Part shown: piece by piece, positions 1-20,515 of the stretch
How positions within the stretch are numbered: position 1 is the first letter of the stretch
Layout of the letters: every line of letters starts with the position of its first letter
NCBI GenBank assembly: GCA_965112735.1
Contig: OZ218963.1
Location: 310,001 to 374,000 of the forward strand
Direction: 5' to 3'
Origin: Phaeosaccion multiseriatum
Lineage: Eukaryota; Protista; Ochrophyta, other classes
DNA length: 64,000 bases
Notes under the pieces: model-generated
The model's input: the letters and a program-made list of their open reading frames with translations, nothing else
Databases searched by the model: none
Told to the model about the DNA's origin: nothing
Made by a program: the position numbers and the translations under genes

Positions 1-426
1 ACCAGGTGTGCCACTCACACCTTTGAATAACTTCTGGACATCGTTGTAGGTAAGTTCCTTCACGTCGTGGTGAACATCCTTCAGGAATGAGAGATAACCT
101 TATCCTTCTTCCTTTTTTCTCTCTTCTCTGGGTCCCTCACGTGGCAAACCAAGGCTCTTTTGAACTCCAAGAAGGAAAGCACTCCCGCAGCCATCATCTT
201 GTCCGGCCATTGCAATGGGGGCGACGCTGCAGCCGGAACAGCAGCGGCAGCAGAGGCCATAAGCAGGTGCGCGTGTGGAGGAGAGGTTTGAAATCTGGGG
301 AAGCTATTACTTTTAGTGCCTTACGTAAGTACGTCACGTAAGATTATTCCCCCATCCATCCCTCCCCTCCCCTCCCTTCACCCAGGTATTACTCTTCTGC
401 ACGTTTAATTAATTTGTAATTACGCG

Positions 427-572
427 TTCTTCTACGCTCTACTCCCCCGCTCTCCCCATTATCTATTGTACAACATAAAAAAAATATACGCTTTCTTCTA
501 CGCTCTACTCCCCCCATCTCCCCATTATCTATTGTACAACATCAAAAAAATATCGCTTTCTTCTACGCTCTA
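427..572. repeat. 65-66 bp tandem repeat, ~2.3 units (second copy 12433-12579)
   Basis: ttcttctacgctcta starts at 427, 493 and 558; the unit continues ctccccc..cattatctattgtacaacat-A-tract. Confidence 0.9.
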
Positions 573-770
573 GTAGTAGTCTCACCCCCGCCCCCCTCCC
601 TCCACTCCACTCCACCCCAAAGCTCACAACGAAGTCCGCCTGAGTGCCCTCTCCTCCTTTCCCCCCGACCCCTCGCTCCACTCCAAAAGGCAGGCCGTCA
701 CCCCCCCTGTACTGCATAGACTGCTGCGGCTGCAGAGACTGGCTGGCGCTGCATGGGCTGTCCCCCCTCC

Positions 771-2871
771 TCATCTCCCTGCTGCTGCTGCTGCCCCTGC
801 TGCTGCCTGCCCCCCCCAAACAGACTGGCTGGCCGTCGCCCCCGCCCACCCCCTCCCCGAGCTGCCGCCCCCCACCGTGTAGTGAGGAGCACCTTGAGTG
901 GGAGCAGTGTTTGCCCCTGTGCCCCCCCCCCTCTCCTCGTCCCCATCCGTGTCCTCATCCATGTCCGCGTCGTCATCCCCATCAGTCCTCCCTCCCCCCA
1001 CACTCCCCTCCCCTCCTCCTCCTCCTCCTCCTCCTCCTCCTCCTCCTCCTCCTCCTCCTCCTCCTCCTCCTCCTCCTCCTCCTCCTCCTCGGCCAACAGG
1101 GCTGAGATCGACGCCCTGCTGCCTCCTCGCCCACCTCGTCCTCTCTTCCGTCTGTGCATCGATCGGGCCGAGGGGCACTCGGCGGTAGGTAATGTAGAGC
1201 TCCTCGTTGTTGCAAGTGAAGGACGCATACTTGACATTCTGGCGCTCCGGGGGGGGCTCCACTACAACTACAATATGCACCACCACCACAGGCACGTCGG
1301 GGCAGTAATAGAGCTCTTCCCAGATGTCCAGCATGGAGGGGACGGCAAGGCTCACCAGCGCCTCCCCCGCATCCCTCCTTTCTATAACCGCACGACCACC
1401 GTGGGACGCCATATGCTTGCCGATGCTAAAACGTACCACCAACTGACCCTCCACGAGGGACTCCAGTGCGTCGTCGTCCCCCTGGAACAGCAGCTTGCCC
1501 CTCGTCAGGCCGTCGAAGGGGCAGCTCAGAGTGGTGGTGTAGCACTTGACGCCGCAGGTCCCGCTCGGAACCACCCTTCCCCCACCACCTCCTCCTCCCC
1601 CCTCCACCCCTCCCCTTTCTTCTGCCGACGCCGCCGCTCCTCCTCCCTTTCCCTCCTCCCCGACGTCGCCCCCTTCCTCTGCCATATCCCCTCCTGGCCC
1701 ACGCTCCGCCGACCTGGTCACCTCCGAAAGCATTCGACCCATGCTGCTAAAATTGGAACTCAAATTGGAGAGCACACTCATGTTGCTCGTGCTCATATTC
1801 GCACTCACGCCCGACCCCACTCGCGGCCCCGTGCGCTCCGACTCCACAATCGTCTCGCTCCAACTCCGACTCGGGCCCGGTTGTACCTCCGGCGCCTCGT
1901 CAACGTCCACGTGGTCATACACGTCCAAGTTCAATGGATCTTCGAGGGAGTTGTGCCGATTAATTGGGTATTGCAGCTGCTGCCGGGGCTGCTGTAATCG
2001 ACTGTCATCCGTGTGGCCGCTGTGCCTGCTGGGGGGAGACTCGTCCCCACCCACGTTTGATCCGTCGTCGTCCGAGGTATCTGAGTGCTCCGGACGCCCC
2101 CCCCCCGGGTAGTCCTCGTTCCGTCCCGGAGCAGGGGATTCACGAGGGGTTGGTGGGGCGCTCCTGTTGCTCGCACTCTTCCTGCCCCGCGGCAGCGGGA
2201 TGGGCACAACCTCGATGCGGGCCGAAGGGAACTCCCCCTTGAGGAGGCGGCAGGGCCCCTGGCTCGGCTGGGGGCCGTTGAACCTGACCTTAATCTCCAT
2301 GGCGCCGTCCCTCTCTGCGGCGGGCTCCAGCTCCCACTCGAGAATGGTGGTGTACTTGGTCTTGAACTTCATCAGCAGGTGCGAGGCCGTCACTGTGTGT
2401 TGCAGTGCAGCAGTGCGAGGCAGGGAGGGAAGTGGTGTGTGGGTCATTGAGTCATCGGATTGGGTAGTAGGCAACAACCTCTCTCTCTCTTCTTGTTCTC
2501 TCTACCACGGCCGGAACGCGACGCCGCCCGGCCGGCCGCCCCTCGCCAGCCAGCCATGGCTGCCCGCCCGCCCATCCCCAGGCTTCGTTCGACTCCACTC
2601 GCGGCTATTGTTGAAGCATGGAACAAGTGGTTTGTCGACACTCTCGCACCATCCACGCACGTCACGTCTTCTCACATCTTGATATTGATTGTGTTGGATC
2701 AGCCTACTACTCCTTTCTCTCCCCTGCCTGCCTCCGCACCCTGCCTCCGCAGCCCTCCTACACTAGTAGGTCCCTCACGCTGCGTTACTCACCATTTTGT
2801 GCGGCTGCTGCCAAGTCATGCACGCGGAACAGCCAGCACCGGTTCTTCTTAGTCTCCTCATTCGACGCCAT
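771..2871 (-). CDS. Unknown family, paralogue A (~566 aa; exons 2871-2793, 2392-771)
   Basis: Exon 1 MASNEETKKNRCWLFRVHDLAAAAQN ends G|GTGAGT and joins in phase at acacacAG|TGACG to VTASHLLMKF. The same 79-nt exon 1 and splice sites are present in all four paralogues. Confidence 0.8.
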
Positions 2872-3704
2872 CCCTCCTTGCTTGTTCCCTGGCTGGTGCT
2901 GTGGCGTCAGCTTGCTTGGCTGTTCTTGGCTGTGTGTGGTGTGTTGCTTATCAGCACAATCACTGCCTCCTGCCTGCGCTGCTGCAAGCAACCCGCTGCC
3001 GCTGCCTGCGCTCCCCCCGCTCTACCAACCGGGTGTGCGAGGGCGAAAAAATGAACGCACTGTCGCTGGAGGTTGCTTGTTCTTGGACTGTTCTTCCTGC
3101 TGGTTTCTATTGAAGCAAGTCTTCACGGATCTCTGTTTCCAGAATATAGATGCTGCCGTGCGCGCCGCAAAGAGGAGGTGTTTGCCGGGGCGTCCGAGCG
3201 TTGCTGTGTCCAGATCAACCGCTCCGCAAAACGGGGTGAAGAATGAAGAATCCGTGACTTTTATTGACTTCATAGGATCCCCTTTTTTTATTCCCCTTCT
3301 CCTTTTCTCCGGAATAATTTCTCTTCGATTCTCTGGCCCCCCGATAGATAAGAAGCCCAGGCCTGTGTTGCGATGTCCCTAGCGCAGTTACCAACAGGGC
3401 TCCATATAGTGCCAACGAATATATATAATATATATTATATATATTATATATACATTATATATATATTGTCTTCATAATAATCTCATGTACATCAGTGACC
3501 CCAGAACCAAGGAAGGAGGGGCGCCAAAGTGGGATCAAATGGTTATCACCGGATCCCAATTACAGACACTTCACTGACATATCTTAACACCCCCCTTGGA
3601 TCGATGCTCCTTCTCCCCTAAACAATTCGATAATACGTAATACACCGCAGGACCAATGAGGAAAAGACAACTCAAAAACAAAAAATAATAATAATATAAA
3701 TTAA

Positions 3705-3948
3705 CACTCGATTTGCGCAAGAATCGCCTAAATGGCCCCCAATATATTTTTTGCACGAACTCCGCAAAATGGCGCCGGGAGAAACGTGTGTAGCTCTTTG
3801 AGATGCCATCAGATGCCATCGATCAATAGTCTTTCGTCTTTCATCGCGTTTTCCCTTCCCTACTTGTCAGCATTTCTGCAAGAGCACTCCCCCTTGCCGC
3901 CCGATCCCTAAAACGGGGGATTTGGGCGATTCTTACGCAAATCGAGTG
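3705..3948. mobile_element. 244-bp non-autonomous TIR element (piggyBac-like MITE)
   Basis: 29-bp TIRs: left CACTCGATTTGCGCAAGAATCGCCTAAAT, right reverse complement CACTCGATTTGCGTAAGAATCGCCCAAAT (2 mismatches). TTAA flanks both sides (3701-3704, 3949-3952). Confidence 0.8.
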
Positions 3949-4146
3949 TTAAAAATACGCTAGATTCCCCCCCCCCTCCCTCCACTCCACTCCACCCCGA
4001 AGCTCACAGCGAAGTCCGCCTGAGTGCCCTCTCCTCCTTTCCCCCCGACCCCTCCACTCCAAAAGGCGGGCCGTCACCCCCGCTGTACTGCATAGACTGC
4101 TGCGGCTGCAGAGACTGGCTGGCGCTGCATGTGCTGTCCCCCCTCC

Positions 4147-6139
4147 TCATCTCCCTGCTGCTGCTGCTGCTGCCCCTGCTGCTGCCTGCCCCCCCCAAAC
4201 AGACTGGCTGGCCGTCGCCCCCGCCCACCCCCTCCCCGAGCTGCCGCCCCCCACCGTGTAGTGAGGAGCACCTTGAGTGGGAGCAGTGTTTGCCCCTGTG
4301 CCCCCCCCCCTCTCCTCCCCATCCGTGCCCTCATCCATGTCCGCGTCGTCATCCCCATCAGTCCTCCCTCCCCCCACACTCCCCTCCCCTCCTCCTCCTC
4401 CTCCTCCTCCTCCTCCTCCTCCTCCTCCTCCTCCTCCTCCTCCTCCTCCTCCTCCTCCTCCTCCTCCTCCTCCTCCTCCTCCTCCTCCTCCTCCCCCTCC
4501 CACAGGGCCAACAGGGCTGAGATCGACGCCCTGCTGCCTCCTCGCCCACCTCGTCCTCTCTTCCGTCTGTGCATCGATCGGGCCGAGGGGCACTCTGCGG
4601 TAGGTAATGTAGAGCTCCTCGTTGTTGCAAGTGAAGGACGCGTACTTGACATTCTGGCGCTCCCGGGGGGGCTCCACTACAACTAAAACGCGCACCACCA
4701 CCACAGGCACATCGGGACAGTAATAGAGCTCTTCCCAGATGTCCAGCATGGAGGGGACGGCAAGGCTCACCAGCGCCTCCCCCGCATCCCTCCTTTCTAT
4801 AACCGCACGACCACCGTGGGACGCCATATGCTTGCCGATGCTAAAACTTACCATCAACTGACCCTCCACGAGAGACTCCAGTACGTCGTCGTCCCCCTGG
4901 AACAGCAGCATGCCCCTCTTCAGGCCGTCGAAGGGGCAGCTCAGAGTGGTGGTGTAGCACTTGACGCTGCAGGTCCCGTTCGGAACCACCCTTCCCCCAC
5001 CACCTCCTCCCCCCTCCACCCCTACCCTTTCTCCTGCCGGCGCCGCCGCTGGCCCACGCACCTCCGACGTGGTCACCTCCGAAAGCACTTGATCCGTGCT
5101 GCTAACATTGGAACTCCAATTGAAGTGCACACTCCTAGGGCTCGATGACCGCGGGTCCGCCATCATCTCGCCCCAATTCTTTGACGAAATGGAGCTGTCC
5201 TTCCTGACGGGATTCAGGCTGGGTGGTACCTCCGACGCGTCGTCAACGTCCACGTGGTGGTACATGTCCAAGTCCCAGTCGTCCTCTTGGTCTAGGAAGG
5301 AGTTTTGCAGCTGCTGTGATTTGCTGTCATCCGTCGTGTAGCCACTGTGAGTGCTGGGGGGAGACTCGTCCCTAGACACGTTTGATCCGTCTTCGTCCGA
5401 GGTATCTGAGTGCTCCGGACGCCCCCCCCCCGGGTAGTCCTCGTTCCCTCCCGAAGCAGGGGATTCACGAGGGGTTAGTGGGGCGCTCCTGTTGCTCCTC
5501 GGCTTCCTGCCCGGAGGCAGCGGGATGGGCACAACCTCGATGCGGGCCGAAGGGAACTCCTCCTTGAGGAGGAGGTAGGGCCCCTCGCTCGGCTGGGGGC
5601 CCTTGAACCTGACCTTAATCTCCATGGCGCCGTCCCTCTCTGCGGCGGGCTCCAGCTCCCACTCCTGAATGGTGGTGTACTTGGTCTTGAACTTCATCAG
5701 CAGGTGCGAGGCCGTCACTGTGTGTTGCAGTGCAGCAGTGCGAGGCAGGGAGGGAAGTGGTGTGTGGGTCATCGAGTCATCGGATTGGGTAGTAGGCAAC
5801 AACCTCTCTCTCTCTTCTTGTTCTCTCTACCCCGGAACGCGACGCCCCCCGCCCCTCGGCAGCCATGTTCGCCCCCCTCCCCAGGCTTCGTTCGACTCGT
5901 CGACTCGCGGCCATTGCTTGTTGAAGCATGGAACAAGTGCTTTGTCGACGCTCTCGCACCATCCACGCACGTCACGTCTTCTCACATCTTGATATTGATT
6001 GTTTTGGACTACTCCTCCGTTCTCTCCCCTCCGCCCGCACCCTCCGCAGCCCTCACTCACCATTCTGTGCGGCTGCTGCCAAGTCATGCACGCGGAACAG
6101 CCAGAACCGGTTCTTCTTGGGCACCTCATTCGACGCCAT
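4147..6139 (-). CDS. Unknown family, paralogue B (~549 aa; exons 6139-6061, 5717-4147)
   Basis: Exon 1 MASNEVPKKNRFWLFRVHDLAAAAQN, conserved GT/AG sites, open exon 2 (ORF 4147..5802). Confidence 0.8.
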
Positions 6140-6669
6140 CCCCGCCCCTCCCTTGTTCCCTGCTGCGGTGTCAGCTTGTTGTGTGTGGTGTGTTAGCTAT
6201 CGCTCAGAACAGATCACTGCCTCCTGGGTGCCTGCGCTGCTGCAAGTCAAGCAACAAGCAACCCAGCCGCTGCCGCTGCCTACCTTCAGGCAGCAGTCCC
6301 CCCGCTCTAGACTACCACCGGGTGCGAATGAAACTCTTTCGTTCTGCTCTGTCGCTGGCTGTCGCGCCTCGCACAAGGCCACTCTGGCTGTGTGTGAGCT
6401 TTCAACTTCTTGTTGTTCTCTCGCTCTCCGCTGCCTCCACAGCCAGTCCACCCCCCGCCCGCCCGCCGGCCGCCCCGCCCCAGCCACTCTTCTATTCAGC
6501 CACGTAAGTCTTCACGTATCTCTGTTTCCAAAATATACATGCTACCGTGCGCGCCGCCAAGAGGAGGCCGTCCGAGCGAGTTCCAGGAGAGGGAGGGGAA
6601 GGAAAATGAATCCGTGACGGGGATCCGTGAAGCATTATTGAAGAAACAGCCAAGCAATCCTATCACATT

Positions 6670-6775
6670 GATCACAGATCTCTCACAAACTCCTGTACAT
6701 ACCAGCTAGATACTCTTAGTATCTATTGCGGTCAAAACGTACCTAACTTCAGGAGTTTGTGAGAGATGTGTGATC
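6670..6775. repeat. Inverted repeat with a nested hairpin, between divergent genes
   Basis: Arms 6670-6695 and 6750-6775 (26 bp, 1 mismatch); internal palindrome tagatact-ctt-agtatcta at 6707-6725. Confidence 0.85.
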
Positions 6776-6909
6776 TGGTGTGATCGAAATGTGAATTCTT
6801 GATGGGTCACAGATACCGGTCACAAAAGGCTTGGCGGGAAAAACATTTGGAGCACACTTCAATACCCACAACCTTGCGAACATCAAAAACAACAAACTAC
6901 TGCGTTACC

Positions 6910-8336
6910 ATGCCGACCATTGGCAAGACGAAGACCGTGAGGGTGATCATCGGAGCCTTCCTCCTTCTCCTCCCCCTCCTGGCCGTGACCGGATGGCTCG
7001 GGTACGAGTACATCAAGAACGACGATGACTCGGGAGGTGTGACGTCCACGGGAATCGACGAGACTTCCGCAGCTGAGGCAATCCAACAAGGCGCCGGAGA
7101 AGGGGCTAAACTGCGAGTGATCGAGCTCACCGATGAAGACATGGTCGACTTGTTGAATGCTGCTGGAGAGGAGGAGGATGAAGAAGAGGATCATGATGAA
7201 GATGGTGACTTCTCTGAGCCCCCACCCGGCAACTACACCTACGGAGATGAAGGTCGTCAGAACAGGCGCCTCTTTTCGGACTGCGGAGAGGACGGCAACC
7301 CCGTGGAGTGCACATCTCGCTATAGGACGTGCTCCAGGAACGGCTGGTAAGATTCCGTATCTGCCTGGCTGTTCCATCCCTTCTAAGTATTTTTTCTGGG
7401 TTAGAGAGTGGGCAAAAAGTTGCTGACGCTCCGGCGACTGTCCTGCTCCATCGACCACCATGCATACATGACAGGGGCGGAGTCGTTCAATTGGCGATCG
7501 CAAAGAACGACGGCACTTTCGGGGGTTGTTCGGGCTTTCTCCTCGCCCCCGACCTTGTGGTGACTGCTGGTCATTGTGTCCGTTCGGTAAGCGAATGGAA
7601 AACCTCTGGCGCGGGTGTCACCGCCTTGTTGGGTCAGACGAGCGCCAATAACCCAATTGAAGTGCGGAAGTCCATCCATGTCCAGTCCTACCTCAATGTG
7701 GATAAAAGAGAGTGGGACGTGGCAATGATCGTCCTTGATACTCCCTTCACCAAGGGATGCAAGTACACCGTCAAGCGCTCGCAGAATCGTTGGGCGTGGA
7801 TGGCCGGGTTCCCAAGCACCCTGCCCTACGGCACCTTGATGCAGGTGAGAAGCAAAACGGCTGCTGACTGGAATATGATATGCACGCTCACTCTGAGAGC
7901 TTGCGCTCTGACAGTCGTATAGCTACACCCATGTACAGTAAGTAGTGTATCAGGGAGGAAACCCACCACCTCTTCCGAATATAAATGAATGCGACCTCCC
8001 TGGCTGGCTGCTCTTCTCTCTCTACAGGTTCAAAGCGAAGGCATGTTTTCGTACAGGGACTCCAGACGCACAGCAGATACTAAGCATGCTATTGCCGGGG
8101 GCATGAGTGGGGGCCCTGCCGAGTCCTGGTACCGGGACGGAACAACACACACCACTGGCATCCTTGTATCATACAATGATCACTCGTCATGCTTTACCAC
8201 GATCACTCTCCTCGGTAGGTCGGATGGGGTTCTCACCAGGCTCCTCGACGATGTGAGCAATATTCTGCCCGGTCTGTGGGAGGAGGAGGTGTACAAGAAC
8301 GGCGAATATTTGTCAGTGACTTCTCTTAGGGTGTGA
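6910..8336 (+). CDS. N-terminally anchored trypsin-fold (S1, V8-like) serine protease; exons 6910-7346, 7475-7844, 8028-8336
   Basis: Hydrophobic segment [21 protein letters not shown], then CSGFLLAPDLVVTAGHC (His), WDVAMI (Asp) and GGMSGGP (Ser). GT-AG introns are in phase. Confidence 0.88.
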
Positions 8337-8647
8337 GTAGTAGTAGAGCTTTTTGCGGGCTCAAGCAGAGGCTTGATGTAACATAGGAGAAGAAGAGTGT
8401 GTATGTGTACAACGGGGGACTGCATCAATATGTGAAGTTGGAAGAGATGATAGACACAACAATTAGCACAGGAGGTTTTCCGTCGTGAATACCTTTCGGT
8501 GGACCTAACTAGACTGAAACGGTCGTTAGTGCTGACTATTGTATATTAGTATGGAACAGTTAAAGGGGGGGCGGAGGAAAAAAAAGAGAACAACATGTGT
8601 CCTATGATTTCCCCATGATTTTCGCTTACGCCGAAAGGGGTTCTTCT

Positions 8648-11600
8648 AAGAGTAATAAAACCTGTGTGAGCGACACGCACGCCCCTTTAGAGGACAGCGC
8701 CTCCCCCTCCCCCCCCACCCCCCTTGAGATTCTTTAGCCACTTCTGGCGCCGCACTTGCCTCCCTGTCTTGGCCCTGCCTCTTACGAACACACTGCCACC
8801 TTTAGAAGTCGGAAGTAAGTTAATTATTTGATATTATTACCATACGCGACCCTCAATTTTCACCCCTCCTCCCTCCTTGGGCGCTTCAGCGCTCTGCCCG
8901 CTCGAGACTTGGCACCCGAGACTAGTGCCACGTCGTCGTTCTCCTCTTGCCCTCTATCTCCTTCGTCTGATTGTTTGGCCTCTCCTTCGTCCACCGGTAC
9001 GCCTGTTCCCTCCTCCTCCTCCATCGCCTCCAGCTCCGACCGACTGTCTTCGCTTCCCTCTTTGCTCATGACGCTCTCGGCCCATCGTCCACTCCCCACC
9101 CCCGTCACATCTCCCTCCGTCCTCTCCACGTCTGCAACGCGTGTGTGCAGGGCCTCTCGCTCACCAGCGCTCACCCCCCCCCCCTTGCCCCCCTGGGGGA
9201 TGGGGATGTCGCTGCGGCCTCCTCTTCCCCCTCTTCATCCGCTGCCGTTGGGCTGACATCGCCCTCTCCTCGTCCTTCGTCCTCTTCATGCCTCATCCTC
9301 TTCATCTGCAGACGCTGCTGGGTCATGTCCCTTTTCTGCCGTCTCAGCGGGCTCTGGCGCCCCTATCCAACCTGCTGCTCGCGCATCTGTCTCGACATAC
9401 GACTTGACGTAGGCGAGAAGCTCTTGCTTCTTGGTCGACTTGTCGGGGGCCTTCTTGCGCACTTCAGACGTGCTGGCTTGGGCGTTGATGAAAGCCCAAA
9501 GACTCCCCTTCAAGAGACTCTTCTTCCCCTTCGGGACGAACCCGAGAGTTCTCAGGACAGCCTCCGTCACACTTTCTTCGTCCTTCTTCTTTTCTCCGCC
9601 GCTGCCTTTTCCTGCGCTGCCTCCTCCCTCTCTGCCATCTTGTCTCTCAGTAGAAGGACCCTCTCTTCGGTGTTAAGGTCCTTACACGTCGACGTTGACT
9701 CCCAAATGGCGTTCAAGCGACGTGCTGCAGCGGAGCCCTGCTTGTGGCTCGCAACGGCGCTTTTGCGCCTTAGCTGCGATAGTCTGTCCACAGACTGTAA
9801 ACGCTCATGAGGAAGGAGAAGGAGGTGCTGCACAGCTGCCACATCGTCCGTCATGAGCAGCTGCTGTGCCTTCGTAACTCGCTCCCTCGCCTGTGCAGGT
9901 GTAGGGTCCAGCAGGGGGTGTTTGACCATGTCGGCTGCGAAGGACGAAGAGCCCACTCGCTGAAGCATGTTCGCGTCGAAAGCCTTTGTCATCTCCTGCA
10001 ACTGCGATGCCTTGGCGTCTCCACTGGCCCCCCGTGTGACGTCAGCAAAGGCCTTGCTGATGGACCCTTCAGCAGGGGCCCTTCCGCTGGTGAAGTTGGC
10101 GAAATACATGGGCGGGTAAAAGCCTGTCGCCTTGAATCCGGACTTGATGGTTTCCAACTTGTGACTCTCCCCCTGAGCCTGGCTGGGAGGCCAGAACAAG
10201 AAGCTCCTGCCGGCTCATGTTCTCTCTGTTGAAGAGTCGCTGCCAGGCCGACGAAAGACTTTGACGTCCAGAGGTTGGAACTCCCCCGATGTGTGCGCGG
10301 GCATGCATGCGCAGATGATGCCGGCTTCGCGCATAGCGTGAAGAGCATCCGGGGTCATCGTGTGCCAACCATAGCCATCCATCAGGAGCAAAATCGGCCA
10401 GAGCTCGTCGGTGACGTATCCGTTCTCCGTATAATGGATCTCTGCTGTGGCGGGCAAGGACTTTTCCAAGTCAGAGCCAGGTGATGCGTCCGCATTGGCA
10501 ATGTGTGCCTACCTCCGTGCTCCAGCAATGACGAAGAACGGGCTCATGCATCCACCAGCGGCATCGACAGTACCGACCAGAGTGACGTGACTTGATCGCT
10601 CCTGAGCTGTCATTGACACATGGTCGCGCCCCTTATGGGCAACAACGTTCATGACACCGCGCTGTGTATTCATGCCTGTCTCATCGCTGTTCCAGAACTG
10701 CACCGGTCGGAGGTCCTCCACCTCACACCCGGATGCCACAGCCAGCTTTGCCAACATACTGAGAAGGGGAGGGGAAGGAAGGGAAGATGAGCAAGCGAGG
10801 CAGAAAACAATTATTATCGTGGTGATACGGAGGACAACGGGAAAGGATGGATGAAGTCATTTGGTGGGGGAGAGTACAGGCCTTTCTCTCTCTCTGCCCT
10901 CTTCCCTCTCCATCTTCCTCTCCATCTTCATCTCCCTCTTTATCTCCCTCTCCCCTTCCGTCTCCCTCCGACCTCTCTCCCTCACACTCTCCCTCCCTCC
11001 TTCCCCCTCTTCCTCGCCCTCGCCCCCTCACTCTCCCTTCCCCTATGCCCTCTCCCTGTCGCACGCGCCTCTCCTCTGTCCTGTCCCTACCCCCACCCCC
11101 CTCTCCAGTCACTTTGGGGGGCGCGGGGGGGCGGGGCGCTATCCTGCCCTCCACGAATGTACACGAATGTGGACTCACCTGGGTAGGAACTCGTCTAGAT
11201 ACTCCTTCCTTGTCTTGTCGTTGCAGCCCTGCGCCCTCGTTAGCTCAAGGGGCTGGGCTCGCCGCGTCACTAAACTTGGGTGGCGGCGCTTCAAGCAAGC
11301 CCTGCAGCCAGCCTCCTGATGCCACGAATGAAGCAACTCCCAATGCATGGGCCATTCTCCTGGCCAGGGTGCCTACATAGTTCCAGTCAACCCCAAAGCT
11401 GCTGTCTGCCATGTCCACAACAAAGCTCACCAGTGCCTCTTCGGTTGAGGCAGGCAAGGCTTGATTGCCCTTCCCACCAACAGCCACAGAAGCAACCCGT
11501 CCCTTGCACCTATTTTCCAGAGCAGTCTTGGTGATTCCATACTGCCGCGCCGCCTTGACCATTCATCACAGCAGACAGAGCCGTTCTGCTGCCCTCCATA

Positions 11601-12402
11601 AAATGTCGTTGCTCTGCCCCTCTCCTCAGGGTGGCCGTCATCTCCACTACCACCAGGCTCGACGTCAGAGGTCCCATCAGACTCCTCAGTAGACATCTGC
11701 ATCTCAGCCTCCCTTTCTTTCAGTCTCCTGAATGTCTTGTGGTCGCCATTCGTCGCCTGCTGGAAGTCATTCCACGTCATCGGCCGATGGAAGGTCCTTC
11801 CCAATGCTCTCAAGGATGGATTCATCAGATAGCCCCTTCACGTTAAGCCTGCCATGACAAGACGAAGAACAAGCAAGGATGAGACCATGAAATTCGGAAG
11901 GGTCTGCTCCAAAGGTCGTTCCCAAGCTTCACATGTTGCTGTGGCTCACCTTGGTGTCTCTCCCCTCAGCTCGGCCAAGAAAGCCTTCAGTCCTTCCTTG
12001 CTGGTACCAGGTGTGCCACTCACACCTTTGAATAACTTCTGGACATCGTTGTAGGTAAGTTCCTTCACGTCGTGGTGAACATCCTTCAGGAATGAGAGAT
12101 AACCTTATCCTTCTTCCTTTTTTCTCTCTTCTCTGGGTCCCTCACGTGGCAAACCAAGGCTCTTTTGAACTCCAAGAAGGAAAGCACTCCCGCAGCCATC
12201 ATCTTGTCCGGCCATTGCAATGGGGGCGACGCTGCAGCCGGAACAGCAGCGGCAGCAGAGGCCATAAGCAGGTGCGCGTGTGGAGGAGAGGTTTGAAATC
12301 TGGGGAAGCTATTACTTTTAGTGCCTTACGTAAGTACGTCACGTAAGATTATTCCCCCATCCATCCCCCCCCCCCCCCTCCCTTCACCCAGGTATTACTC
12401 TT
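8648..12402 (-). mobile_element. Putative full extent of the pogo-like DNA transposon (5' part also present at 1-397)
   Basis: The transposase lies inside. Weak candidate TIRs: AAGAGTAATAAAACCTGTGTGA (8648-8669) and reverse complement AAGAGTAATACCTGGGTGA (12384-12402). No clean TA duplication. Confidence 0.45.
9254..11562 (-). pseudogene. Degenerate pogo/Fot1-type DDE_1 transposase
   Basis: HTH_psq-like KAARQYGITKTAL, CENP-B-like FVASGGWL, then KRRHPSL..RRAQPLE after a frameshift near 11295. Intron ~11178-10760. Catalytic motifs WNSDETG, LLLMDG..H and PAHTS..QPLDV..F, plus IKSGFKATGFYP. In-frame TAG at 10509 and further frameshifts. Confidence 0.92.
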
Positions 12403-12777
12403 CTGCACGTTTAATTAATTTGTAATTACGCGTTCTTCTACGCTCTACTCCCCCGCTCTCCCCATTATCTATTGTACAACATAAAAAAAATATACGCTTT
12501 CTTCTACGCTCTACTCCCCCCCTCTCCCCATTTATCTATTGTACAACATCAAAAAAATATCGCTTTCTTCTACGCTCTAGTAGTAGTCTCACCCCCGCCC
12601 CCCTCCCTCCACTCCACTCCACCCCAAAGCTCACAACGAAGTCCGCCTGAGTGCCCTCTCCTCCTTTCCCCCCGACCCCTCGCTCCACTCCAAAAGGCAG
12701 GCCGTCACCCCCCCTGTACTGCATAGACTGCTGCGGCTGCAGAGACTGGCTGGCGCTGCATGGGCTGTCCCCCCTCC

Positions 12778-14868
12778 TCATCTCCCTGCTGCTGCTGCTG
12801 CTGCCCCTGCTGCTGCCTGCCCCCCCCAAACAGACTGGCTGGCCGTCGCCCCCGCCCACCCCCTCCCCGAGCTGCCGCCCCCCACCGTGTAGTGAGGAGC
12901 ACCTTGAGTGGGAGCAGTGTTTGCCCCTGTGCCCCCCCCCCTCTCCTCGTCCCCATCCGTGTCCTCATCCATGTCCGCGTCGTCATCCCCATCAGTCCTC
13001 CCTCCCCCCACACTCCCCTCCCCTCCTCCTCCTCCTCCTCCTCCTCCTCCTCCTCCTCCTCCTCCTCCTCCTCCTCCTCCTCCTCCTCGGCCAACAGGGC
13101 TGAGATCGACGCCCTGCTGCCTCCTCGCCCACCTCGTCCTCTCTTCCGTCTGTGCATCGATCGGGCCGAGGGGCACTCGGCGGTAGGTAATGTAGAGCTC
13201 CTCGTTGTTGCAAGTGAAGGACGCATACTTGACATTCTGGCGCTCCGGGGGGGGCTCCACTACAACTACAATATGCACCACCACCACAGGCACGTCGGGG
13301 CAGTAATAGAGCTCTTCCCAGATGTCCAGCATGGAGGGGACGGCAAGGCTCACCAGCGCCTCCCCCGCATCCCTCCTTTCTATAACCGCACGACCACCGT
13401 GGGACGCCATATGCTTGCCGATGCTAAAACGTACCACCAACTGACCCTCCACGAGGGACTCCAGTGCGTCGTCGTCCCCCTGGAACAGCAGCTTGCCCCT
13501 CGTCAGGCCGTCGAAGGGGCAGCTCAGAGTGGTGGTGTAGCACTTGACGCCGCAGGTCCCGCTCGGAACCACCCTTCCCCCACCACCTCCTCCTCCCCCT
13601 CCACCCCTCCCCTTTCTTCTGCCGACGCCGCCGCTCCTCCTCCCTTTCCCTCCTCCCCGACGTCGCCCCCTTCCTCTGCCATATCCCCTCCTGGCCCACG
13701 CTCCGCCGACCTGGTCACCTCCGAAAGCATTCGACCCATGCTGCTAAAATTGGAACTCAAATTGGAGAGCACACTCATGTTGCTCGTGCTCATATTCGCA
13801 CTCACGCCCGACCCCACTCGCGGCCCCGTGCGCTCCGACTCCACAATCGTCTCGCTCCAACTCCGACTCGGGCCCGGTTGTACCTCCGGCGCCTCGTCAA
13901 CGTCCACGTGGTCATACACGTCCAAGTTCAATGGATCTTCGAGGGAGTTGTGCCGATTAATTGGGTATTGCAGCTGCTGCCGGGGCTGCTGTAATCGACT
14001 GTCATCCGTGTGGCCGCTGTGCCTGCTGGGGGGAGACTCGTCCCCACCCACGTTTGATCCGTCGTCGTCCGAGGTATCTGAGTGCTCCGGACGCCCCCCC
14101 CCCGGGTAGTCCTCGTTCCGTCCCGGAGCAGGGGATTCACGAGGGGTTGGTGGGGCGCTCCTGTTGCTCGCACTCTTCCTGCCCCGCGGCAGCGGGATGG
14201 GCACAACCTCGATGCGGGCCGAAGGGAACTCCCCCTTGAGGAGGCGGCAGGGCCCCTGGCTCGGCTGGGGGCCGTTGAACCTGACCTTAATCTCCATGGC
14301 GCCGTCCCTCTCTGCGGCGGGCTCCAGCTCCCACTCGAGAATGGTGGTGTACTTGGTCTTGAACTTCATCAGCAGGTGCGAGGCCGTCACTGTGTGTTGC
14401 AGTGCAGCAGTGCGAGGCAGGGAGGGAAGTGGTGTGTGGGTCATTGAGTCATCGGATTGGGTAGTAGGCAACAACCTCTCTCTCTCTTCTTGTTCTCTCT
14501 ACCACGGCCGGAACGCGACGCCGCCCGGCCGGCCGCCCCTCGCCAGCCAGCCATGGCTGCCCGCCCGCCCCTCCCCAGGCTTCGTTCGACTCCACTCGCG
14601 GCTATTGTTGAAGCATGGAACAAGTGGTTTGTCGACACTCTCGCACCATCCACGCACGTCACGTCTTCTCACATCTTGGTATTGATTGTGTTGGATCAGC
14701 CTACTACTCCTTTCTCTCCCCTGCCTGCCTCCGCACCCTGCCTCCGCAGCCCTCCTACACTAGTAGGTCCCTCACGCTGCGTCACTCACCATTTTGTGCG
14801 GCTGCTGCCAAGTCATGCACGCGGAACAGCCAGCACCGGTTCTTCTTAGTCTCCTCATTCGACGCCAT
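12778..14868 (-). pseudogene. Paralogue A' (near-identical to A) with a 1-nt frameshift near 13595
   Basis: Exon 1 at 14868-14790, exon 2 from 14389. A C-run is one base shorter than in A, which splits the ORF. This could be an assembly error. Confidence 0.7.
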
Positions 14869-15716
14869 CCCTCCTTGCTTGTTCCCTGGTGCTGTGGCGT
14901 CAGCTTGCTTGGCTGTTCTTGGCTGTGTGTGGTGTGTTGCTTATCAGCACAATCACTGCCTCCTGCCTGCGCTGCTGCAAGCAACCCGCTGCCGCTGCCT
15001 GCGCTCCCCCCGCTCTACCAACCGGGTGTGCGAGGGCGAAAAAATGAAGGCACTGTCGCTGGAGGTTGCTTGTTCTTGGACTGTTCTTCCTGCTGGTTTC
15101 TATTGAAGCAAGTCTTCACGGATCTCTGTTTCCAGAATATAGATGCTGCCGTGCGTGCGCGTGCGCGCCGCAAAGAGGAGGTGTTTGCCGGGGCGTCCGA
15201 GCGTTGCTGTGTCCAGATCAACCGCTCGCAAAAAACGGGGTGAAGAATGAAGAATCCGTGACTTTTATTGACTTCATAGGAATCACCACTTTTTAATTCC
15301 TTTTTCTCCTTTTTCTCAGGAATAATTTCTCTTCGATTCTCTGGCCCCCCGATAGATAAGAAGCCCAGGCCTGTGTTGCGATGTCCCTAGCGCAGTTACC
15401 AACAGGGCTCCATATAGTGCCAACGAATATATATATTATATATATATATATATATAATGTATATATTATATATATATTGTCTTCATAATAATCTCATGTA
15501 CATCAGTGACCCCAGAACCAAGGAAGGAGGGGCGCCAAAGTGGGATCAAGTGGTTATCACCGGATCCCAATTACAGACACTTCACTGACATATCTTAACA
15601 CCCCCCTTGGATCGATGCTCCTTCTCCCCTAAACAATTCGATAATACATAATACACCGCAGGACCAATGAGGAAAAGACAACTCAAAAAAAAAAAAATAA
15701 TAATAATATAAATTAA

Positions 15717-15963
15717 CACTCGATTTGCGCAAGAATCGCGTAAATGGCCCCCAATATATTTTTTGCATGAACTCCGCAAAATAGGCGCCGGGAGAAACGC
15801 GTGTGTAGCTCTTTGAGATGCCATCAGATGCCATCGATCAATAGTCTTTCGTCTTTCATCGCTTTTTCCCTTCCCTACTTGTCGGCATTTCTGCAAGAGC
15901 ACTCCCCCTTGCCGCCCGACCCCTAAAAAACGGGGGATTTGGGCGATTCTTACGAATCGAGTG
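15717..15963. mobile_element. Second copy of the TTAA-flanked MITE
   Basis: TTAA at 15713-15716 and 15964-15967; TIRs slightly more decayed. Confidence 0.78.
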
Positions 15964-16018
15964 TTAAAAATACGCTAGATTCCCCCCCCCCTCCCTCCAC
16001 TCCACTCCACCCCGAAGC

Positions 16019-17120
16019 TCACAGCGAAGTCCGCCTGAGTGCCCTCTCCTCCTTTCCCCCCGACCCCTCCACTCCAAAAGGCGGGCCGTCACCCCCGCTG
16101 TACTGCATCGACTGCGGCTGCAGCGACTGGCGCTGCATGTGCTGTCCCCCCTCCTCCTCTCCCTGCTGCTGCTGCTGCTGCTGCTGCCCCTGCTGCTGCC
16201 TGCCCCCCCCAAACAGACTGGCCGTCGCCCCCGCCCACCCCCTCCCCGAGCTGCCGCCCCCCACCGTATAGTGAGCCCCTTGAGTGGAAGCAGTGTTTGC
16301 CCCTGTGCCCCCCCCCCTCTCCTCCCCATCCGTGCCCTCATCCATGTCCGCGTCGTCATCCCCATCAGCCCTCCCTCCCCCCATACCCTCCTCCCCTCCT
16401 CCTCCTCCTCCTCCTCCTCCTCCTCCTCCTCCTCCTCCTCCTCCTCCTCCTCCTCCTCCTCCTCCTCCTCCTCCTCCCCCTCCGCCTCCGCCTCCTCCTC
16501 CTCCTCCTCCTCCTCCCCCTCCCACAGGGCCAACAGGGCTGAGATGGACGCCCTGCTGCCTCCTCGCCCACCTCGTCCTCTCTTCCGTCTGTGCATCGAT
16601 CGGGCCGAGGGGCACTCTGCGGTAAGTAATGTAGAGCTCCTCGTTGTTGCATGTGAAGGACGCGTACTTGACATTCTGGCGCTCCGGAGGGCCCTCCACT
16701 ACAACTAAAACGTCCACCACCACCACATGCACGTTGGGGCAGTGATAGAGCTCTGGCCAGATGTCCAGTATGGAGGGGAAGGCAAAACTCACCAGGGCCT
16801 CCGCCGTACCCATACTTTGTATAAGCGCACGGCCGCCGTAGGACACCTCACGCTTGCCGATGCTAAAATATACCACCAACTGACCCTCCAGGAGAGACTT
16901 TAGTACGTCGTCGCCCCCCTGGAACAGCAGCATGCCCCTCTTCAGGCCGTCGAAGGGGCAGCTCAGAGTGGTGGTGTAGCACTTGACGCCGCAGGTCCCG
17001 CTCGGAACCACCCTTCCCCCACTACCTCCTCCCCCCTCCACCCCTCCCCTTTCTCCTGCCGCCGGGTCTCCCACAGCCCCTACAGCTGCCAACGCGGCCA
17101 CTCCCGCTGCCGTATCACCA

Positions 17121-17168
<48 letters not shown>

Positions 17169-18841
17169 GCCGCTCCTCCTCCTCCTCCTCCTCCCTCCTC
17201 ACCGACGTCGCCCTCTTCCACTGCCATCTCCCCTGCCCCAAGCACCTCCGACATGGTCACGCCACCCCCCACCTCCGAAAGCACTCGACCCATGTTGCTA
17301 AAATTGGAACTCAAGTTGGAGAGCCCACTCATGTTGCTCGTGCTCATATTCGCACTCATGCTCGACCCCACTCGCTGCCCCGTGGGCCCCGAGTCCGACA
17401 GCAGTTCACCCCACCCCGTCGACGAAATGGAGCTGTCCTTCTTGCTGGGATTCAGGCCGGCCAGTGCCTTCGCTGCCTGCCCTGGGTCAGCGTCGCTAAA
17501 GTCTGGGGGCCCCCCGTCTGCCTCCTCGCCTTGGTCCACGTCCACGTCCCCATCCAAGTCAAGTCCTACAGGCCTCGCCACGTGTTTCTGGAATGAATTG
17601 AGCCCTCTCAGGGAGAGCAGCTCCGCCGGAGGAGGGGGAGGCTCGAGAATGTCGTGCCTTGGTGCTCCCCTACTCATGTTCATGTTCATGTTGCCTTGCC
17701 TTCCCTCTGCCCCTCTTCCCCCCCCCCGCTCACGCCCGCCGCCCTGCTGCCGCTCGTCCTTGCACTCCTCGTCATCGTTGTCCTCACTGTCGTACTCGTC
17801 ACCCCTGTTGCCCCCCCTGTGGGTGGCGTATGCCACACTTCTCAGCTGCTGGTGGTACTGCTGTTGGTGGTACTGCTGCTGCTGGAGCCCTTGACTCATG
17901 CGATTATACTGCACCTGCTGGCCGTGCTGCTGCCATCCGTTGCCATCCGTGTAGGCACTGCTGCCGTGATATTCGTCCCCAGACGCATCTGATCCGTCAA
18001 CCTCCGAGGCATCTGAGTACCCCCGATGGGCCCCTCGAGGGTAGTCCTCGTTCCCTCCCAGAGCGGAGGCCCCTGAAGCGGCAGCAGCGGCCGCAGCAGA
18101 AGGGGTTGGTGATGTGGGAGGCGTCTTGCGGTGCCTTTTGCTGCTGTTACTACTGAGCTTGCTAGCACCTCTAGCAGCACCTACAGGAAGGGCGCTGCTG
18201 TTGCTCTTCCTGCCCCGCGGCAGTTCGACGGGCACAGCCTCGATGCGGGCCGAAGGGAACTCCCCCTTGAGGAGAAAGCAGGGCCCCTCGCTCGGCTGGG
18301 GGCCCTTGAACTTAACCTTAATCTCCATTGCGCCGTCAATCTCTGCGGCGGGCTCCAGCTCGCACTCGAGAATGGTGGTGTACTTGGTCTTGAACTTCAT
18401 CAGCAGGTCCGAGGCCGTCACTGTGTGTTGCAGTGCAGCAGCGCGAGGCAGGGAGGGAAGGGGTGTGTGGGTCATCGAGTCATCGGATTGGGTAGGCAAC
18501 CTCTCTCTCGTCTCTCTACCCCGGAACGTGACGCCTACCGCCCCTCGCCATGCCCCCCCCCCCCCCCCAGGCTTGGTTTTACTCGAGTGGTGGCCGATGT
18601 TGAAGCATGAAAGGAACAAGTGCTCTGTCGACGCTCTCCCACCATCCACGCACATCACGTCTTTATCACGTCTAGATATATTGTTCTTGATTGTTTGGAC
18701 CACCCCTCCGCTCTCCCCCTTCGCACCCTCCGCAGGCCTACCCTCTCATTACTCTCGCTCACCATTCTGTGTGGCTGCGGCCAAGTCATGCACGCGGAAC
18801 AGCCAGCACCGCTGCTTTTTGGTCCCCTTATTCGACGCCAT
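16019..18841 (-). CDS. Unknown family, paralogue D (longest, ~826 aa; exons 18841-18763, 18420-16019)
   Basis: Exon 1 MASNKGTKKQRCWLFRVHDLAAATQN, same splice sites, expanded low-complexity linker and longer C-terminus. Confidence 0.82.
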
Positions 18842-19335
18842 CCCTGCTGCGGCGTCAGCCATGTTGTGTGTGTGTTATCAGCACAATTACTGTCTCCTGC
18901 GCTGCTGCAACCCGCTGCCGCTGCCTGTCAGTCCCCCCGCTCTACCTTTTTCCGGATGCGAATGAAACTCTTTCGTTCTGCTCTGTCGCTGCTGGCTGTC
19001 TCGCGCCTCGCACAAAGCCACTCTTTGTTGGAGCCTTAACTCGTTGTTCTCTGTGCGCTGCCTCCTTCCCCCCCCACACTATTCTATTCAAGTCTTCGCG
19101 GATCTCTGTTTCCAAATATAGACGCTGCCGTGCGCGCCGACACAAGAGGAGGCCGCTGTGTCCAAGCGTGGCCCAGATCGATCAACAGCTCCGCTGCCTC
19201 GGGTTTGTTTTTCCGTGCTCGCCGTTCCGTTGATGATCGCCTTCTCGTGAAGAATCAGTGATCGATGGCCTCGGGTTCCAGTTTGAGATGGATGGCAGCA
19301 AAAGGGCATCAAACTTCACACAAACTTGTGCAGCG

Positions 19336-20515
19336 ATGGCGAGTGGCGCCCCTCCCGCCGAGTGAGTGCTTTAGCGAGTAAAGCGGGTGGTGGTGGCGGT
19401 GGTGCTGCTGCTTGTGGTGGCTGTGGTTAGGGGGATGCAGGGTGTGTGGTTGCTTTTGCGGCAGGGTGGTGAGGCATAACTGCCAAAGTCTCCTCCCTCT
19501 GTCTTTGATACCGAGACCTTGCTCTCCACCTTGTTCTCCTTCCTCCCCTTCTCATTGGCGATGTCTGCCAGTTTCCTGCCCGCCGCCAGTGTCCCTCCTA
19601 TACGGGTCTTACCGGCTCCCTCCCTCCTCCTGATTGTGACCCACCGCCCTTCCTCCCCGCCCCCCTCCTCCTCCTCCTCCTGCTGGAACAGTCCTCTGGC
19701 AGACCGACGACGGAAAGATGAGGCGGTTCGGGCGACCATTATGCAAAAGCTGGTGGAGACAGGGGAGAAGGAGCGACTCAAGGCAAGTATAGCGTGATCG
19801 GGCTTCAAGGGAGTGCTATCCTCCCGATGGGTTCCTTTATTTTGCCGATTAGCTTAGCTGTCTCTCTGCCGGTACTGTGGCTGTCGTGCCGTCCTCGCGT
19901 GAAGAAAATGCCCCCTCTCATGCTATGCTAATGGAGCGATGTGTCTTGCTGCAATTCATTGTGGCTGTCTGTCGCGGGTTGGAACGAGCAGGATTTGCTC
20001 CGAGAGCGTCTGATTCAGTGCGGTTGGAAGGATGATCTCAAGGAGCACTGCAAGGAGATCATCCACAGCAAGGGGCTCGAGAAGATTACTGTGGATGAGC
20101 TTGTGGCAGAAATCACCCCGAAAGGAAGAGGTGAGGGAGGAGAGGAGGGAGGGAGGCAGGCCGGGTGGAAAGGAGGGACGAAAGGAGGGAGGGAGGAAGG
20201 GCGGCGGTGGGTGGAGTGGAGCAGACAGCAACACAGCATGCAGGGCGCACTCACCGCTCACCGCATTGCACATATTCCTCGGGCGCCGGACTCTGCTGCT
20301 GAACACACCGGCACCCATCCACGAAACAAGGCACCCTCTCCCCTCCCTCTCCCTATCTGCGGATGGAAACGCCCTCTCTCTCTGTCTTTGTCAAACCCAC
20401 CGCCCGCCTCCGCTCTCTCTCACTCTGCTCCCCCCCCCCCCCCTCTCTCAGCCACGGTGCCTGATGACGTCAAGGCCGAGCTGCTGCAGAGGATTCGGAA
20501 CTTCCTCCAGTCGGC

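Follow-up and report, generated by a model that had tools for sequence, protein, structure and literature searches.

A lineage-restricted gene family of Phaeosaccion and brown algae with a predicted ferredoxin-like N-terminal domain and a conserved beta-rich C-terminal domain

The ferredoxin-like fold, with a standard strand order of 4-1-3-2, is among the commonest folds known. Rep endonucleases of the HUH class carry a metal-binding His-hydrophobic-His pair on the central strand (motif II) and a catalytic tyrosine (YxxK) on a helix after the core sheet (motif III), and RRM domains are recognised by the conserved exposed aromatics of RNP2, in strand 1, and of RNP1, in strand 3. Brown algae and their relatives, in which multicellularity evolved independently, possess many lineage-specific genes without known function, and integrated viruses and transposons are common in their genomes. 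Here we describe a family of paralogous genes from Phaeosaccion multiseriatum, four of which lie in a 64,000-nucleotide stretch of contig OZ218963.1 (positions 310,001 to 374,000 of assembly GCA_965112735.1), hereafter the window. An initial annotation of this DNA had proposed that the genes encode a possibly inactive, domesticated Rep-like domain fused to an IPT/TIG-like domain. Our analysis shows that this is a real, undescribed, fast-evolving and lineage-restricted gene family, with relatives in two brown algae that share its two domains and, in Pylaiella, a first intron that agrees in phase and lies within one codon of its own. The N-terminal domain (N-domain) is modelled as ferredoxin-like, and its descent from a Rep protein is unsupported.

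Whole-genome searches with the C-terminal domain (C-domain), with the part of the N-domain encoded by exon 2 (N-part) and with exon-1 DNA each led to the same seven loci in the 67-Mb genome. Four are in the window (G+C about 58%), two lie just upstream on the same contig (C14; loci L014 and L015) and one is on contig C3 (L016, the C3 copy). The members of what the initial annotation called a four-copy family stand where it placed them, and the genome has exactly seven copies. The six copies on C14 make up one tandem cluster, and the seventh stands alone on C3, in gene surroundings unrelated to those of the cluster. The copies in the window fall into types A (copies 1 and 3), B (copy 2) and C (copy 4, with the longest linker). 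The window members are laid out as follows, a slash marking a splice boundary.

771-2871, minus strand: copy 1 (type A)
2793-2871, minus strand: copy 1, exon 1, 79 nucleotides (nt), 26 codons plus one base, from ATG to AATG/GTGAGT
2393-2792, minus strand: copy 1, intron, 400 nt, GT..AG, phase 1
2172-2392, minus strand: copy 1, N-part, from helix 1 to strand 4; the basic PRGRK motif comes next
1575-2171, minus strand: copy 1, hypervariable low-complexity linker (acidic, S/N-rich, G-rich)
1110-1574, minus strand: copy 1, conserved beta-rich C-domain, about 155 residues
771-1109, minus strand: copy 1, low-complexity tail (poly-G, acidic, Q/A-rich) to the stop codon; putative 3' end
4147-6139, minus strand: copy 2 (type B), with exon 1 at 6061-6139, intron at 5718-6060 and exon 2 at 4147-5717
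5497-5717, minus strand: copy 2, N-part
4525-4989, minus strand: copy 2, C-domain
12778-14868, minus strand: copy 3 (type A), with exon 1 at 14790-14868, intron at 14390-14789 and exon 2 at 12778-14389
13108-13572, minus strand: copy 3, C-domain
16019-18841, minus strand: copy 4 (type C), with exon 1 at 18763-18841, intron at 18421-18762 and exon 2 at 16019-18420
18200-18420, minus strand: copy 4, N-part
16547-17011, minus strand: copy 4, C-domain

Copy 3, otherwise almost identical to copy 1, lacks 1 nt in a run of six G at about 13599, and its frame is split there; it is either a fresh pseudogene or the product of a homopolymer assembly error. In the predicted proteins the C-terminal tail depends on the frame that is read: it is Ala/Gly-rich in copies 1 to 3 (771-1109 in copy 1), whereas in copy 4 (16019-16546) and the C3 copy (L016 2661-3030) a Q-rich tail is read through to a common ending. 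A version of the Q-rich tail also exists in copy 1, in a different frame (open reading frame 698-1237).

Relatives of these genes are few. Searched exhaustively against 1.84 billion representatives as a HMMER profile, the C-domain alignment returned one true relative (E 1e-5), the 2191-residue protein g3391.t1 of the brown alga Nemacystus decipiens (EukProt EP00752_P003681; labelled P0002), and three further candidates (P0001, P0003 and P0004) that were rejected as spurious repeat proteins. The Nemacystus protein consists of three consecutive units of N-domain, linker and C-domain, the second without an equivalent of exon 1, and is probably a gene-predictor fusion of three tandem genes. A word search with an alignment that included it found a protein of Pylaiella littoralis (E 8.6e-23; P0005), a public partial protein without a name from GCA_964200295.2; P0006, from the word search, was rejected as a WD40 protein matched through low complexity. 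Compared by hhalign with profiles built from the family's own copies only, the Pylaiella protein matches the N-part (probability 93.5%, E 2.3e-7) and the C-domain (probability 92.8%, E 4.1e-7) in the same order, and a reciprocal search of the Phaeosaccion genome with the Pylaiella protein matches this family only. The Pylaiella reading frame continues past the last annotated residue with GPQLKV (L017 23775-23880), which matches the next C-domain strand in Nemacystus.

The likeness to the brown-alga proteins extends over the N-domain, the basic motif after strand 4, the disordered linker and the C-domain, all in the same order, and tandem copies occur in both Nemacystus and Phaeosaccion. The differences are also substantial: identity is only about 23-31%, a low-complexity insert of about 30-50 residues separates strands 2 and 3 in the brown-alga N-domains, and 6 exons or more, spread over 14 kb, make up the Pylaiella gene, against 2 exons over about 2-3 kb in the family.

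Other searches returned no relative. Word searches found none with the C-domain alone, or with the whole open reading frame, where low-complexity words swamped the search; nor did an ESM Atlas search with the family's own C-domain. Scans of 2.9 million viral contigs and of metagenome contigs with the family alignment were likewise empty, PDB sequence searches with three profiles gave chance rows only, an exact look-up of the Nemacystus protein in the assemblies had no result, and Rfam had no match on window positions 1-20000. Pfam has no family for any part of the full open reading frames (hmmscan, E <= 1). With the threshold relaxed to E <= 10, no family matched the exon-1 peptide or either domain of the family's own copies, or either brown-alga protein. 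The description of the family as undescribed thus holds, with no Pfam match and no name from any source, and within the reach of these searches it appears to be confined to brown algae and Phaeosaccion.

The first exon is short and cryptic. In all seven copies it is 79 nt long, starts with ATG, ends with AATG/GTGAG and supplies 26 codons plus one base, so that a phase-1 intron leads into the long open frame of exon 2. The introns are of the GT-AG type and 304-400 nt long across the seven copies, and the acceptor AG directly precedes positions 2392, 5717, 14389 and 18420 and the TGAC with which exon 2 begins. The junctions of the initial annotation (2793/2392, 6061/5717 and 18763/18420) use the same donor and acceptor sites, and the brown-alga gene supports them. 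In copy 1 a stop codon inside the intron closes the exon-2 frame, which is open only from 2477, and the intron lengths are not all multiples of three; splicing, and not read-through, is therefore required. A start at an in-frame intronic ATG, 54 nt upstream of the acceptor, was also weighed and rejected: the C3 copy has 7 additional bases close to the intron's 3' end that put this ATG out of frame, with AG/TG and the phase retained, and use of the ATG would delete a strand that the brown-alga homologs keep.

Comparison with these homologs gives strong support to the 79-nt exon and its splice. By Smith-Waterman alignment the 26-residue exon-1 peptide matches residues 3-16 and 1262-1275 of the Nemacystus protein, the latter at the start of the third unit, and residues 14-24 of the Pylaiella protein, each match lying directly upstream of the helix that corresponds to the start of exon 2. 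Among 1000 shuffled sequences none reached the score against Nemacystus for copies 1, 4 and C3, and between 0 and 12 reached the observed scores over all copies and both targets; BLASTP of the 26-residue peptide against the Nemacystus protein found no match. When the Pylaiella exons were mapped on their genomic locus (L017) by tblastn, a phase-1 intron emerged that reads CAT G/gtgaga ... cacag/GC GTC ACC, where the family has AAT G/gtgagt ... cacag/TG ACG. The two introns agree in phase and lie within one codon of each other. A separately annotated gene of another genus thus has a matching phase-1 intron, and therefore the same first-exon design.

In its 3' two thirds the intron varies between paralogues about as little as the exons do, in the C3 copy as well (minus strand, 2393-2792, 5718-6060, 14390-14789 and 18421-18762; L016 4547-4850). 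This region contains near-invariant blocks, namely TGACGTG (with an ACGT core), CCAAT and TGACTC[A/G]ATGAC, and may represent an intronic regulatory element or an internal promoter.

The fold of the N-domain, of about 100 residues, was read from an AlphaFold2 (AF2) model of the natural Pylaiella homolog and an eight-row alignment (A4). In the model, strands at residues 17-25, 48-56, 105-113 and 133-139 and helices at 34-44 and 119-129 follow one another in the order beta-alpha-beta-beta-alpha-beta, which is that of a ferredoxin-like domain, with predicted local distance difference test (pLDDT) values of 65-90 over the block. A disordered insert specific to brown algae separates strands 2 and 3, and residues 148-308, after strand 4, are disordered (pLDDT < 50). 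Known ferredoxin-like chains align over residues 13-144 in a structure search. The ferredoxin-type layout ascribed earlier to the N-domain is thus borne out, on the model of the homolog. Several features of the domain are kept in three lineages: a KKxR-type basic cluster that immediately precedes strand 1, C/G-W where that strand begins, Y-T ahead of strand 2, an invariant F-x-GPQP directly after strand 3, two leucines in helix 2, and P/G-RGRK after strand 4, lengthened to RKRKV in Nemacystus. The C-domain contributes PS-M/I-x-x-I/V-W/C-P-E-hydrophobic-aromatic and TYRR. F-x-GPQP, P/G-RGRK, TYRR and the PS-M/I-x-x-I/V-W/C-P-E core are the motifs that the family has in common with the brown-alga proteins.

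This layout invites the reading that a HUH Rep endonuclease domain of the CRESS-virus, Helitron or Replitron type was domesticated as the N-domain, catalytically dead but kept for DNA binding. The fold class, ferredoxin/RRM-like, is the same; strand 1 begins with a basic residue, C/G-W and hydrophobics, loosely like Rep motif I; and HUH Rep transposons do occur in algae (PMC10288648). A Foldseek search with the Pylaiella model brought up two CRESS Reps among its BFVD matches (E 0.09 and 0.13), but nothing in PDB or BFVD reached E <= 0.001, and the Rep matches were tied with or ranked below an HMG-CoA reductase subdomain, ACT, HMA, RRM, S6 and acylphosphatase, so that none stands out. HUH Rep domains, from CRESS-DNA viruses, Helitrons and Replitrons to SIRV1 ORF119 (PDB 2x3g), have the HUH histidines, the catalytic tyrosine and the helix that bears it, whereas the alignments show no histidine pair on strand 3 in the family copies, Nemacystus or Pylaiella and no conserved tyrosine after strand 4, in agreement with the initial annotation, which had already remarked on both absences. 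The Pylaiella model has no third helix, its chain running straight into the basic motif and the disordered linker. The residues conserved across lineages differ from Rep motifs I-III, and Pfam gives the family neither a Rep match (Viral_Rep, Gemini_AL1, Helitron-like or others), even at E <= 10, nor an SF3 or other helicase. No relative was found in the viral contigs either, so that no match was found at the level of sequence, and the structural match is no better than that to unrelated ferredoxin-like domains. The proposed Rep origin thus finds no specific support, and we consider it highly improbable; the ancient co-option of a DNA-binding module of the Rep or E2/EBNA1 type is likewise not indicated.

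Other members of the fold class fare little better. Were the N-domain a divergent RNA-binding domain of the RRM type, the proteins would be RNA-binding regulators, for which the flanking basic segments would be suited, and the named ESM Atlas neighbours are indeed mostly RRM-like (RRM_1, PARP14 RRM and PNMA_N, scores 0.75-0.80), within a general lean of the feature neighbours towards RRM-like families at 0.75-0.83. Atlas scores below 0.9 are leads only, however, as one third of shuffled proteins reach 0.8. Pfam gives no RRM match at E <= 10, the RNP1 and RNP2 aromatics are not conserved, strand 3 has no conserved aromatic pattern, and strand 1 varies between lineages on the face that does not carry its conserved W-x-hydrophobic pattern. 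This identity is therefore unlikely. We judge equally unlikely a ligand-binding or dimerisation domain like those of ACT, HMA or Dabb proteins, which would make the family one of signalling or scaffold proteins without nucleic-acid binding. The Atlas model does match ACT and DUF4936 (template modelling score 0.42-0.51), and Dabb/ABM dimers are among the weak Foldseek matches, but all of these lie at the same noise level and no Pfam match accompanies them. The metal-binding cysteine pair of HMA is missing, and the conserved motifs would follow strands 3 and 4, as judged from topology, and not occupy the loop between strand 1 and helix 1 that ACT and HMA domains use. RNP1/RNP2, the ACT ligand loop and the HMA CxxC are all absent from the family N-domain.

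The C-domain is conserved, all-beta and about 150 residues long. It resembles IPT/TIG domains, the E-set immunoglobulin (Ig)-like domains of Rel, NFAT and CAMTA, in being all-beta, in its size class of about 100-150 residues and in lying C-terminal to a putative nucleic-acid-binding part. At E <= 10 neither the Pfam TIG family (PF01833) nor any other Pfam family matched the C-domains of two family copies, or those of Pylaiella and Nemacystus. An AF2 model of the family's own C-domain, built from six near-identical copies, reached a pLDDT of only 44, and its structure matches (VIA search) were below noise; in the Pylaiella model the C-domain has pLDDT 66-81, within a partial protein that ends before the last strands. 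Foldseek listed weak rows for chains of the fibronectin type III or Ig type (the TcpF C-domain, EpoR and a pre-B receptor, E 0.03-0.2), the part of the model covered not being stated. No Ig or IPT signal reached significance in Pfam, in Foldseek on the Pylaiella model or in the structure search on the low-confidence model of the family's own domain.

Comparison among the copies separates conserved from variable parts. Across the copies, identity in the N-part and the C-domain is 85-100%. When the three gene types are set against one another and against the C3 copy, identity is 88-96% in exon 1, which has no indels, 92-96% in the N-part and 85-96% in the C-domain; in these two regions the sole indel is a single codon, in the N-part of the two copies upstream of the window. 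The linker (432-1218 nt) is 62-82% identical in this comparison (62-87% between the gene types), with many in-frame indels, and the 300 nt upstream of the gene are 55-77% identical with hundreds of gapped positions. Both a hypervariable linker and a second conserved beta-rich domain, as first described, are therefore evident. The C-domain tree runs from C3 through copy 4 to the B pair and the A trio, and each of its three inner branches is supported; the members nearest to the brown-alga proteins are copy 4 and the C3 copy. The two upstream copies have in common an altered patch in the loop between strands 2 and 3 that is absent from their nearest relatives, which argues for gene conversion; together with tandem duplication, such conversion is how the family expands. 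The pairwise ratio of nonsynonymous to synonymous substitution rates (dN/dS) is 0.4-1.0 in both domains and higher in some recent pairs with few changes, certain pairs exceeding 1. Constraint is weak, yet the frames, splice signals and domain cores are retained.

How such proteins might act can be proposed from their layout. We regard these genes as paralogues of a taxonomically restricted nuclear gene family, with a ferredoxin-like N-domain, a disordered linker and a beta C-domain, whose products would bind a nuclear polyanion or partner, and we give this reading about an even chance. The basic clusters before strand 1 (KKxR-type) and after strand 4 (PRGRK-type) would fit nuclear-import signals and, together with the acidic and Q-rich disordered segments, suggest a nuclear protein. 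By topology, the start of strand 1 and the ends of strands 3 and 4 should share one pole of the domain, beside the GPQP loop. Because the basic clusters fit import signals and would lie at this pole, the protein would most likely be a nuclear one whose basic pole binds either a partner or a polyanion, the latter being nucleic acid or chromatin. The disordered linker, acidic and rich in Q, S and G, would serve as a regulatory or interaction segment, and the C-domain as a second binding module. Several considerations weigh against this proposal: the predicted N-domain fold comes from the model of the Pylaiella homolog and not from the family's own N-domain, the splice model is a purely comparative one, the clustering of conserved motifs at one pole was reasoned from topology and not from coordinates, and the high dN/dS among paralogues, about 0.4-1.0, also fits relaxed constraint on redundant copies.

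The C14 cluster (C14:293300-329000) is built of tandem units of 8.7-12 kb, in which a trypsin-like protease gene and a fragmented pogo transposase accompany one or two family genes, in the order B, protease, pogo / A, protease, pogo / A, B, protease, pogo / A, C. The neighbours in the window that do not belong to the family are:

6799-8336, plus strand: trypsin-like serine protease gene (PF00089), co-amplified in the tandem unit
9567-11825, minus strand: fragmented pogo-type transposase (DDE_1 and HTH_psq pieces), co-amplified in the tandem unit

Between units the protease and pogo copies are 98.4-99.96% identical, and the latest amplifications are therefore very recent; the family genes within the same units diverge more, and types A, B and C are older than these amplifications. 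Long open reading frames on the plus strand opposite the family genes (753-1997, 12760-14109 and 16983-17894, up to 449 residues) are rich in Pro, Ser and Leu runs. They were rejected as genes, since they (753-1997, for example) look like mirror frames of GC-rich low-complexity coding DNA.

It could be argued that the copies are decaying or non-functional duplicates, carried without a function of their own in a recently amplified module of transposon and protease. The dN/dS values, the frameshift in one copy, the low-complexity content and the company of a dead pogo transposase in the tandem units speak for this view. Against this, the frames of 6 of the 7 copies are intact over 460-800 codons despite dozens of indels, many of them in the linker, and exon 1, the splice sites and both domains are retained in every copy, including the one that stands alone on C3. 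The architecture and the intron position have, moreover, been kept in brown algae at a protein identity as low as that given above. We therefore think decay very unlikely.

A bolder version of the nuclear-binder proposal holds that the family represents a new kind of nuclear regulator that binds nucleic acid or chromatin, exists only in the brown-alga lineage and uses the basic pole of the N-domain rather than the face of its sheet. Tandem amplification, gene conversion and hypervariable linkers would then reflect genetic conflict, for example with integrated viruses or transposons. We offer this as an unlikely, speculative extension.

The family is one of many orphan families of the brown-alga lineage, though an unusually tidy and testable one. 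Its design is simple, in that basic motifs border a small folded domain, which a disordered linker joins to a second, beta domain, and the family is conserved across the lineage and expanding in tandem. Its description adds two sequence families that Pfam does not have, and corrects an attractive over-reading, in that a ferredoxin-like layout is by itself no evidence of viral Rep ancestry. If its members are true nuclear binders, they would be candidate lineage-specific regulators.

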